From the sequence record NC_070963.1: a stretch of 64,000 nt of DNA; one strand, 5' to 3'. A program made the position numbers and the translations under genes. Of the stretch, positions 30,536-32,941 are shown one piece after another (the stretch's first letter is position 1; each line of letters opens with the position of its first letter). Under the pieces are notes generated by a model. That model did not search any database. It had not been told where the DNA came from and saw only the letters and a list, made by a program, of their open reading frames with translations.

Positions 30536-32941
30536 ATGACTGCTACTATTGCACAACGCAATTCTATTAATCCCTGGGAATCTTTCTGCCAGTGGGTTAC
30601 TTCAACAAACAACCGTCTTTATGTGGGGTGGTTCGGTTCTCTGATGGTTCCTACGTTGCTCGCTGCAACTGTATGTTTCATCGTTGCCTTCATTGCTGCA
30701 CCTCCTGTAGACATTGATGGCATCCGCGAACCAGTTGCTGGTTCTCTTATGTACGGAAACAACATCATTTCTGGTGCTGTAGTTCCAAGTTCTAATGCGA
30801 TTGGATTGCATTCGTAAAGGAGTGCCTTATATCAGAAATGGTATAAGAAAATCGGGTGAACTGCTGGAAACCTAACCCAGTGAAAGGATAAAAGTGTATA
30901 AATAGTAATATGGAAACCACTTCTATCCTAATGACTATCTACGAACAGTTTATTGAGTATTGTAAAACTGAAAACTTTGATAGTGAGTACTATGAAAAAC
31001 ACCATATTGTCCCTAAGCATTCTGGTGGTACTGACGACAAAGAAAATCTGATTTACTTACCTCCCCATATTCACACTCTTACACATTATTATCGTTGGTT
31101 ATCATTTCAAGAAATAGGTGACAAAGTTGCTTACGAAATGAGATGGAACCAAGATTTGGAAAGTGTGAAACTTCGTTCTCAACTTGCTGTTGAAACTAAT
31201 AAAGAAAAAGGAAATCTTTTTTGGAATAGTGAATGGCAAAGAGAACAAGGACTAAAAGGTGGAACAAAAGGAGGTTCTGCTAATACTCAAAACCAGTTCC
31301 TTGCTAGACAAAAAGTTGGTAAAACTTATGGAAAGCAAGTTGGACTTTCAAGACAAAAAGGTGATTTAGTAGAAATACTAAAACATCCAACTACTTGGAA
31401 ACATAAAACTGGAAAAACCGTCACTCTTCCTCCACAAGAAAGTGTTACTAAACTTTGTGAGGAACTACAAAGTATTGAATACTTTGATACTCCAAACAAG
31501 TCTCTTATAGGAAAACTTCTTCGTGGTGAAAAGAAACAACTTTATGGATGGTCTTTTACTGGTACGGCAATCAGCATCCAAGACACAGACGATACTTCTG
31601 TGTAAGGTTCATCGACTAGTCGGTTTCTCAAGCGTGAGATGTAATACGACATTAGCGCCCGACACCCTCAATTTAGGGTGATGATATAGTCAGCACCATA
31701 AGGAAACTTATGGGTTATGTGTTCTATCCAATCTGGGAAGCAGCAAGTCTTGATGAATGGCTCTACAACGGTGGTCCTTTCCAACTGATTGTATTTCACT
31801 TCTTGATTGGTATCTACTGCTACATGGGTCGTGAATGGGAACTTTCTTACCGTCTAGGTATGCGTCCTTGGATTATGGTTGCTTACAGCGCACCTGTTGC
31901 TGCTGCTTCTGCCGTCTTCCTGGTTTATCCTTTCGGTCAAGGTTCATTCTCTGATGCGATGCCTTTGGGTATCAGTGGAACTTTCAACTACATGCTTGTG
32001 TTCCAGGCAGAGCACAACATCCTGATGCACCCCTTCCATATGCTTGGAGTTGCTGGTGTCTTCGGTGGTTCTCTGTTCAGTGCTATGCACGGTTCTCTGG
32101 TTACTTCGTCACTGGTTCGTGAAACCACTGAAACTGAATCACAGAATTATGGTTACAAGTTTGGTCAAGAAGAAGAGACTTATAACATCGTGGCTTGACA
32201 GAGCGGGTCACGCTAAACTGGGTGAACTGCTGGAAACCTAAGTCCTTTATGGATATGGCAATCAGCATCCAAGTCCTAGATACATCTAGGAAAGGTTCAG
32301 AGACTACCTGAGGGATACAGTTCCCTTAATAACAGGCAAGAGCGCCCAGCACCTTTAATAGGTGAAGATATAGTCCAACCCTCTAGGAAACTTTTGGATA
32401 ATTGGCTCACGGTTACTTTGGACGACTTATTTTCCAATATGCTTCGTTCAACAATTCTCGTTCACTTCACTTCTTCCTCGCCGCTTGGCCCGTTGTGGGC
32501 ATCTGGTTTACTGCTCTAGGCGTAAGCACTATGGCATTTAACCTAAACGGATTTAATTTCAACCAAAGTCTAATTGATAGTCAGAACCGAGTAATTCCTA
32601 CTTGGGCAGACATTTTAAATCGTGCTGGACTTGGTATGGAAGTGATGCACGAGCGTTTTGTGAACGCATGGCGCTCGTTAAATCGGATGAATTGCTGGAA
32701 CTCTCTTGTAGACAATCAGCAGCCAAGCCTTGCAAGCGTGTAAGGAAGGTTCAGAGACTAGGCGGTGGATGACGCTTCATCCGTAATACGCCACTAGCGT
32801 CCGACACTCTTATGAGTGATGATATAGTCCGCTCCCTCTGGCGACAGAGGTTAAAACAGAAGGAATGCTCACAACTTCCCACTTGACCTTGCTGCTGCTC
32901 AAACAACTTCGGTTGCCTTGACTGCACCATCCATCGGGTGA
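30536..32941 (+). CDS. psbA: Photosystem II D1, join(30536..30811,31722..32195,32405..32656,32864..32941), 359 aa
   Basis: Exons of 92+158+84+25 codons join in frame: NAIGLH|FYPIW, NIVA|AHGYF, MHER|NAHNF. Confidence 0.96.
30812..31721 (+). mobile_element. Group I intron 1 of psbA (910 nt, H92/F93), carrying an HNH gene
   Basis: Exon ends in U paired to gugc IGS; core motifs gggtgaactgctggaaac, aatcagcatccaag, ggttcatcgactag, gatatagtc; ends in G. Confidence 0.92.
30910..31605 (+). CDS. Intron-encoded HNH homing endonuclease
   Basis: [19 protein letters not shown]...H...H; TATAAATA at 30897. Confidence 0.88.
   Translation: METTSILMTIYEQFIEYCKTENFDSEYYEKHHIVPKHSGGTDDKENLIYLPPHIHTLTHYYRWLSFQEIGDKVAYEMRWNQDLESVKLRSQLAVETNKEKGNLFWNSEWQREQGLKGGTKGGSANTQNQFLARQKVGKTYGKQVGLSRQKGDLVEILKHPTTWKHKTGKTVTLPPQESVTKLCEELQSIEYFDTPNKSLIGKLLRGEKKQLYGWSFTGTAISIQDTDDTSV
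32196..32404 (+). mobile_element. Group I intron 2 of psbA (209 nt, A250/A251), no ORF
   Basis: P1 cgtggct/ggtcacg with U.G; ggttcagagacta; gaagatatagtcc; terminal G. Confidence 0.93.
32657..32863 (+). mobile_element. Group I intron 3 of psbA (207 nt, R334/N335), no ORF
   Basis: P1 acgagcgt/gcgctcgt; aatcagcagccaag; ggttcagagacta; gatatagtcc; terminal G. Confidence 0.93.

Follow-up and report, generated by a model that had tools for sequence, protein, structure and literature searches.

Group I introns interrupt psbA, the gene for the D1 protein of photosystem II, in phages as well as in chloroplasts. Cyanophages S-PM2 and S-RSM88 each have a single psbA intron, at nucleotide (nt) site 1002. 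According to PMC5931967, which cites its reference 33, the S-PM2 intron splices during infection, and PMC6083498 cites Zeng et al. 2009 for its 'collaborative homing' with F-CphI, an endonuclease that cleaves the intronless psbA of phage S-BM4 and whose cleavage is blocked by the intron in S-PM2 (PMC6083498). Phage S-CBWM1 (MG450654) has two annotated psbA group I introns, at approximately nt 649 and at nt 1011, in a three-exon join. Among chloroplast genes, the psbA of Chlamydomonas reinhardtii is split by four introns of group I with light-regulated splicing (cited in PMC5931967), and that of Oedogonium contains ten introns, at sites 179, 276, 384, 408, 525, 548, 570, 645, 754 and 898 (PMC2442088). 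Here we describe the psbA gene at positions 30536 to 32941 of a 64,000-nt stretch of sequence record NC_070963.1, which belongs to Synechococcus phage S-SRM01; the whole stretch is called the window below, and its numbering is used throughout unless another record is named. Judging from the nucleotide sequence, we consider it highly probable that this is an intact gene of four exons, from which three group IA-type self-splicing introns would be removed to give a pre-D1 protein of 359 amino acids (aa).

S-SRM01 is a freshwater cyanomyovirus with a 240.8-kb genome that originates from the Serangoon Reservoir in Singapore, and it has been cited as the sole isolated freshwater cyanophage with psbA (bioRxiv 10.1101/2024.12.13.628456). 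Window region 30300-33500 is 100% identical to its sequence (MW015081 / NC_070963). In both deposited records, the psbA locus consists of two coding sequences for 'photosystem II D1 protein', 93 and 162 aa long, with an endonuclease coding sequence between them. The 162-aa sequence begins at an ATG within an intron (31710), 12 nt 5' of the true exon 2. GenBank and RefSeq are blank at window positions 32199-33007 (209041-209849 of MW015081), so that introns 2 and 3 lack features, as does the sequence for D1 residues 251-359, which makes up exons 3 and 4. The genome paper (PMC8557907) names the open reading frames ORF319 and ORF321 'partial psbA genes' and proposes a single self-splicing intron with an endonuclease as the explanation of the split. 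Because GenBank and the genome paper give two partial D1 genes and one intron, introns 2 and 3 and the last two exons constitute new annotation.

Exons, splice junctions and the D1 product

The exons, all on the plus strand, were translated one by one, and each was aligned to the intronless D1 proteins of phages S-CAM3 and S-BM4. Exon 1 (30536-30811) starts with the ATG at 30536, encodes D1 residues 1-92, which correspond to residues 1-91 of S-CAM3 D1, and ends with the residues ...GLH. Exon 2 (31722-32195) encodes residues 93-250 and is 97.5% identical to residues 92-249 of the S-CAM3 protein. The two exons absent from the GenBank annotation follow: exon 3 (32405-32656; residues 251-334) is 91.7% identical to S-CAM3 residues 250-333, and exon 4 (32864-32941; residues 335-359 and the stop codon) is 84% identical to the last 25 residues of the S-CAM3 and S-BM4 proteins. 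Together the four exons cover residues 1-91, 92-249, 250-333 and 334-358 of the reference D1 at 84-97% identity, and the junctions between them show neither gap nor overlap.

The joined exons give a D1 protein of 359 aa in which all 22 residues that we checked are present. The ligands and other functional residues stand at their canonical numbers (D61, Y161, D170, E189, H190, H198, H215, H252, F255, S264, H272, H332, E333, H337, D342 and A344), with H337, D342 and A344 being supplied by exon 4. The full-length product therefore retains the residues of the Mn4Ca cluster, YZ, P680, the non-haem Fe and the QB site that mark a protein as a member of the D1 family.

The splice junctions were located by a brute-force search of all donor and acceptor positions near each site, the mapping being done with local anchors. 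For each intron, only one solution keeps the reading frame, places a U before the 5' splice site and leaves a G as the last intron base; the terminal G is present in 3/3 introns. Intron 1 (30812-31721, 910 nt) lies at nt site 276, between H92 and F93, and its core is split by an open reading frame (ORF) in loop L5. Intron 2 (32196-32404, 209 nt) lies at site 750, between A250 and A251, and intron 3 (32657-32863, 207 nt) at site 1002, between R334 and N335, which is the site of the S-PM2 intron. The latter two have no ORF, and all three are in phase 0 and on the plus strand. If they were left unspliced, translation would read 'S*' at intron 1 and '*' at intron 2, and it would continue for 28 codons into intron 3 before reaching a stop.

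An initial annotation of this DNA, made from its letters alone, had already proposed a psbA gene with these limits, and the ATG at 30536 and the stop codon ending at 32941 agree with it exactly. Its three phase-0 group I introns at H92/F93, A250/A251 and R334/N335 are borne out by the exon tiling, the unique junctions and the Rfam matches described below, and the immediate stops that it predicted for unspliced introns 1 and 2 are those just given. It had also placed a single intron at 334/335 in S-PM2, with which our site mapping agrees.

The deposited annotation invites another reading, in which psbA has become a pseudogene, decaying or broken into fragments, and yields no functional D1. GenBank and RefSeq list just ORF319 and ORF321 as partial D1, residues 251-359 are unannotated, and the genome paper concurs that psbA is partial. 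Such decay is very improbable, as the four exons are in frame, have 84-97% identity to intact phage D1 with no insertions or deletions, and keep every ligand that was checked. Furthermore, the intervening sequences have the features of intact ribozymes whose guides fit their own exons, and the same introns occur in many phage psbA genes with equally intact exons. Intein and frameshift explanations of the split gene were also considered and rejected.

Ribozyme features of the three introns

The group I assignment was examined with Rfam model RF00028, which has a gathering score of 50 bits. Intron 2 scores 91.9 bits (E = 2.9e-22) and intron 3 scores 81.5 bits (E = 3.8e-19); the S-PM2 psbA intron reaches 87.8 bits in a comparable scan. 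In intron 1, the match is confined to the 3' half (31467-31713) and amounts to 39 bits (E = 3.5e-8), which we attribute to the 696-nt ORF that splits the model. A close homologue of this intron, present in L008 and L010, attains 52.6 bits. In addition, both flanks of intron 1 can be aligned to ORF-less members of the same family, 75 nt on the 5' side to P1-P5 and 170 nt on the 3' side to P5'-P9.

The ORF of intron 1 (30910-31605, plus strand) encodes a putative HNH homing endonuclease of 231 aa, which matches Pfam PF01844 with 31.1 bits against a cut-off of 21.4. Alignment to the ORF-less relatives places it between the P5 strands, in loop L5, with its stop codon in P6'. The last ~50 nt of the ORF overlap P5', P4' and P6 of the intron.

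For each intron, a guide-search script found a P10 pairing with the 3' exon and a P1 helix in which a U.G pair stands at the 5' splice site. In intron 1, P1 is GCAU/GUGC with a 2-bp extension (guide at 30822-30825) and P10 is UUCU/AGGA. In intron 2, the corresponding helices are CGUGGCU/GGUCACG (guide at 32206-32212) and GCUC/GAGC, and in intron 3 they are CGAGCGU/GCGCUCG (guide at 32671-32677) and AUGC/GCAU. The U.G pair, the core motifs and the terminal G that the initial annotation had reported for every intron all hold.

A consensus structure was predicted with RNAalifold for 13 members of the intron family from eight insertion sites, introns 2 and 3 among them. It recovers P3, P4, P5, P6 and P8, with compensatory changes in 21 of the 37 predicted pairs. 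The P7 strands (GACUA / UAGUC) are invariant and are therefore uninformative for covariation. In all three introns of S-SRM01, the 5' strand of P7 is followed by an insert of 30-35 nt, and in this P7.1/7.2 region the consensus fold contains one inner helix (columns 143-147 / 154-158), which shows compensatory changes. The insert is consistent with subgroup IA. On the sequence evidence, the group I identity of the introns is far beyond chance, with E values of 1e-19 to 1e-22 and with homologous introns that dozens of independent contigs carry at these sites.

Several points weigh against this interpretation of the locus. The depositors read it as two partial genes. Intron 1 stays under the RF00028 gathering score in the window (39 vs 50 bits) and its P1 is short, with just 4 exon pairs and 2 extension pairs. 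The overlap of the HNH ORF with P5'-P4'-P6 could set translation against RNA folding. Intron 2 comes without an evident mobility mechanism. Finally, the splicing of the three introns is deduced from DNA, not from RNA.

Some of these points also bear on an alternative in which the exons and ribozymes are as described, but at least one intron, most probably the ORF-containing intron 1, splices poorly and requires a protein cofactor or maturase, or in which the serial splicing acts as a light or redox gate on the supply of D1. Regulation of this kind has parallels: the ratio of spliced to unspliced S-PM2 psbA RNA changes with light (PMC5931967), and the splicing of the four Chlamydomonas introns is light-regulated, as cited in the same article. 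The Chlamydomonas gene, although it belongs to an organelle, resembles that of S-SRM01 in having several group I introns that must all splice for D1 to be made. The short P1 of intron 1 and the ORF overlapping its core point in the same direction, and three obligatory splicing events would multiply any inefficiency. Nevertheless, no sequence feature distinguishes regulated from constitutive splicing, and the number of introns varies from 0 to 6, at differing sites, among close relatives, a distribution that fits selfish gain and loss better than conserved regulation. We therefore rate impaired or regulated splicing as unlikely, if worth keeping in mind, and prefer the reading in which all three introns are self-splicing elements.

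Related introns in phages and chloroplasts

Among 50,697 phage records, the cyanophages with sequences resembling the three introns were only S-PM2, S-RSM88, S-CBWM1 and S-SRM01. In a search with an environmental psbA of six introns, S-PM2, S-RSM88 and S-SRM01, which match 38-40% of its length, were alone among the matches listed in covering more of it than the exons (25%). The intron of S-PM2 and S-RSM88 and intron 3 of S-SRM01 occupy the identical site, nt 1002, and share the P1 guide core GCGCUC; they are also similar in length (212 nt vs 207 nt). S-CBWM1 is similar to S-SRM01 in that its psbA combines ORF-containing and ORF-less introns, the first of them bearing a homing endonuclease ORF, and both of its introns pass RF00028. 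However, the two introns are at sites unlike those of S-SRM01, and there is no F-CphI-type gene 3' of psbA.

S-SRM01 is the first cultured phage found with three predicted psbA introns, and for cultured phages its sites 276 and 750 are new. A search of the accessible literature found no paper on a phage psbA with three or more introns, an absence that is not proof. As to phage genes in general, Staphylococcus phage Twort reportedly has three group I introns in one gene, orf142 (Landthaler and Shub 1999). It would be a precedent for three self-splicing introns in a protein-coding phage gene, in a non-photosynthetic setting in which gene, host and intron lineage are all unrelated to those of S-SRM01.

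Uncultured phages present a different picture. Homologues of the HNH protein with 85-96% identity exist in many metagenomes, and in 11/11 fetched loci with such a homologue the gene lies within a site-276 psbA intron. In every one of these loci that reaches far enough downstream, site 276 is followed by further introns, which were confirmed with Rfam. L008 and L009 have introns at sites 179, 276, 317 and 890, L018 at sites 276, 317 and 1008, and L013 and L014 at sites 276 and 1002, while L010 and L015 have three introns each. Larger sets are found in L363 (sites 179, 276, 570, 645 and 750) and L372 (sites 317, 548, 750, 890 and 1011), and L042 (positions 6012-10012, minus strand, of IMGVR_UViG_3300032271_000996) has six RF00028 introns in one gene that is preceded by a PhotoRC-II leader. 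L027/L362 likewise belongs to the uncultured phages whose psbA is split by five or six group I introns. As a side observation near the 3' end of psbA, L015 (2599-3126) shows two RF00028 matches back to back, which may be two introns a few codons apart or one nested in another; L035 is noted alongside it (approximately site 1003, 491 nt).

The intron at site 750 was sought with a strict pattern built from the P10 guide, the P1 guide and P3 of intron 2. From IMG/VR it retrieved 24 contigs, in each of which psbA either has an intron of 208-209 nt at site 750 or is cut at this intron by a contig end. JGI/ENA metagenomes gave 20 contigs that carry this intron, a number of them duplicates of the IMG/VR ones. 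In all, approximately 40 uncultured contigs carry a near-identical site-750 intron. The insertion sites now counted in phage psbA number at least 14: 179, 230, 276, 317, 548, 556, 570, 645, ~649, 750, 890, 1002, 1008 and 1011.

In an IMG/VR sample of 80 psbA loci, 64 of the 70 complete genes are intronless and 5 have a single 3' intron; this sample is biased to a contiguous exon 2 region, which leaves no room in it for introns that fall between residues 93 and 250. As far as can be predicted from these contigs, intron-bearing psbA is a minority form, yet a recurrent one. A generic 15-mer of the family, CAATCAGCANCCAAG, found psbA at 8 loci among the matches listed in viral contigs and at none of the bacterial loci among the matches listed in genome contigs, the matches in both sets being mostly unrelated. 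As it has 14 specified bases, many chance matches are expected in 596 Gb.

Hence, the view of the initial annotation that the sites at 276 and 750 and the triple arrangement are not known in phages holds for cultured phages, where S-SRM01 is the sole three-intron case found, and fails for uncultured ones, in which both sites and sets of three to six introns recur. The survey of viral psbA insertion sites that it had called for yields the same divided answer, the triple arrangement being already present in metagenomes, to the extent described, and not among cultured phages. A phage psbA with more than one intron was in any case no novelty, since that of S-CBWM1 had been annotated with two.

A comparison of the introns by modules shows that the three of S-SRM01 are, as judged from their sequences, paralogues of one family with a mosaic structure. 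They are mutually 54-73% identical in any module. The 5' module of intron 2 is nearest to the site-317 introns (78-79%), whereas the nearest relatives of its middle module are the introns of site 1011 and of S-PM2 (88-90%). In S-PM2, whose intron has its insertion site in common with intron 3, the middle part (P6-P7-P7.1/7.2) has 88% identity to intron 2 and 58% to intron 3. The middle module of intron 1 is nearest to the site-317 introns and to the site-1002 intron of L013 (83-85%). That the 5', middle and 3' thirds have different nearest relatives suggests recombination among introns within one gene.

The introns at sites 317 (L008:4842-4870, L021, L031 and L034) and 750 (window 32190-32212) have in common the guide GGGTCAC and the exon hexamer GTGGCT that precedes them. 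They differ in the P10 guide, AUAG at site 317 vs GAGC at site 750, and each guide fits its own 3' exon. This fits a transposition in which reverse splicing took an intron from one site to the other and P10 adapted afterwards, as far as sequences can tell. The estimated chance of a hexamer in common with ~14 sites is roughly 10%, which is not negligible.

The intron relationships are also relevant to the integrity of the assembly. In principle, intron-rich repeats with 60-90% identity could mislead an assembler into joining intron-containing reads from different phages; there is no direct evidence that they did. The introns of S-SRM01, at the identities given above, are too divergent to be collapsed or mis-joined, the guides of each fit the exons that flank it, and independent contigs repeat the same combinations of sites and introns, such as 276 and 750 in L363. 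A chimeric origin of the locus is extremely improbable, and we continue with the four-exon gene as assembled.

Outside phages, the closest known counterpart of intron 1 is found in green algae. The Oedogonium intron at site 276 (Oc.psbA.2) is of subgroup IA1 with an HNH ORF in L5 (PMC2442088 Table 4), and an IA1 intron at this site is widespread in Chlorophyceae, for example as Ft.psbA.2 of Floydiella (PMC2997540 Table 4). The chlorophyte introns, of which those of Oedogonium and Floydiella are considered here by their descriptions, agree with intron 1 of S-SRM01 in insertion site, type of ORF and its location in L5, and differ in residing in a plastid replicon instead of a phage. A sequence of plastid type could be compared directly. 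The metagenomic contig L123 (ena:ERZ25071726 ctg273196; 214,279 bp, circular) contains rpoB, a tRNA gene and a plastid-type D1 ending in ...DLAAVSAPTLVA. Two introns interrupt its psbA (L123:3088-6447), one at site 276 and one at site 525, the latter with an ORF for a GIY-YIG protein. The site-276 ORF (P0034) is 37% identical to the HNH ORF of S-SRM01 over its full length (E = 9e-42), and in the 5' segment of the ribozyme the two introns share 80% identity over 56 nt. The 3' ribozyme part and the ORF have diverged strongly. Phage sites 179, 276, 548, 570 and 645 all coincide with Oedogonium site numbers; beyond site 276, this likeness is numerical alone.

It is a real, if still tentative, possibility that one mosaic group IA family, which it would have in common with green-algal chloroplast psbA, has made phage psbA its hot-spot, with exchange between phages and plastids in fresh water and moves by reverse splicing. 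If this were true, a phage-plastid intron family could be tested in culture in S-SRM01 alone.

Endonuclease genes, expression signals and significance

A second endonuclease gene lies 66 nt 3' of the psbA stop codon (33008-33436, plus strand). It is a free-standing homing endonuclease gene of the F-CphI type, with an Endonuclease VII fold (PF02945, 91.9 bits), and its product of 142 aa is 83% identical to S-PM2 F-CphI in a gapless alignment. D101, H102 and R110, which mutation has shown to be needed in F-CphI (PMC6083498), are kept. S-PM2 has its gene at the same downstream position and differs from S-SRM01 in having one intron only. Around site 1002, the joined exons 3 and 4 of S-SRM01 match the psbA of S-BM4, the F-CphI substrate, at 44/48 nt. 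In all loci fetched, homologues of F-CphI with more than 70% identity occur only beside psbA with a site-1002 intron, and no such homologue accompanies those that have only the site-750 intron. More divergent genes of the Endonuclease VII type (31-58% identity to the S-SRM01 protein) were observed just 3' of intronless phage psbA in L060, L068, L071, L072, L077, L085, L100-L102, L106, L112, L115 and L121, and a further one (40% identity) stands beside the psbA of L008 and L009, which is without a site-1002 intron.

In the scenario that we propose, psbA would be transcribed with a PhotoRC-II leader, and each of the three introns would excise itself by a guanosine-initiated two-step transesterification, all three excisions being needed for the D1 mRNA. 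The introns would be selfish mobile elements, rendered harmless by self-splicing, of one related family that may have colonised many sites in phage psbA. The HNH enzyme is expected to cut intronless psbA at site 276 and thus to drive the homing of intron 1. Intron 3 probably interrupts the target of the F-CphI-type enzyme at site 1002, and would shield psbA from it and ride on its double-strand breaks, a collaborative homing similar to that of S-PM2. Intron 2, which is 252 bp from site 1002 and has no partner, could persist by vertical descent or co-conversion or could have entered its GUGGCU site by reverse splicing. The in vivo splicing of all three introns, the endonuclease cuts at sites 276 and 1002 and any light-dependent regulation are inferences, with the splicing, homing and protection steps being drawn from group I chemistry and from the S-PM2/F-CphI system.

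The 5' leader of psbA contains a PhotoRC-II RNA motif (30399-30496, plus strand; RF01717, 64.2 bits vs a gathering score of 39), which is also found upstream of the multi-intron psbA genes of L008, L013, L015, L018 and L042. A sigma-70-like promoter candidate precedes it (30333-30361, plus strand), with TTGACA, a 17-nt spacer, TATGAT and the TG of an extended -10 element (11/12 consensus matches). This candidate is a consensus match alone, and the total count of promoter-like sites in the psbA region does not exceed that of shuffled controls. The stop codon is followed by a terminator-like hairpin with a 9-bp stem and a 4-nt loop and by the T run TTTTTAT (32951-32982, plus strand). Two other promoter-like sites, each likewise a consensus match alone, were seen near the 3' end of the gene. 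One, which is strong (32918-32947, plus strand; TTGACT, an 18-nt spacer and TATAAT with TG), lies inside the last psbA codons, 5' of the F-CphI-type gene, and the other, which is weak (33014-32985, minus strand), is at the place of the S-PM2 antisense RNA CfrI. Elsewhere in the window, Rfam reports seven tRNA genes (7277-13736), an abiF RNA motif (7235-7271, 49 bits) directly 5' of the first of them and a wcaG RNA motif (14585-14682, 101 bits).

For S-SRM01, these results correct the record: the phage is predicted to encode a complete D1 whose production needs three splicing events. It is a culturable phage that has three related putative ribozymes in one photosynthesis gene together with what appear to be two homing strategies, an HNH enzyme encoded within an intron and a free-standing enzyme of the F-CphI type. 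We regard the psbA of S-SRM01 as an annotation correction and a good experimental system, and not as a new principle, since the arrangement is not rare in environmental phages. As the survey shows, phage psbA in metagenomes is systematically broken up by gene callers, and consequently counts and trees of viral psbA may miss or mishandle intron-rich lineages. The more interesting lead is the wider pattern of many insertion sites, up to six introns per gene, and sites and an endonuclease held in common with plastids. That these sites and the endonuclease recur in chloroplast psbA points to mobile introns passing between phages and plastids.

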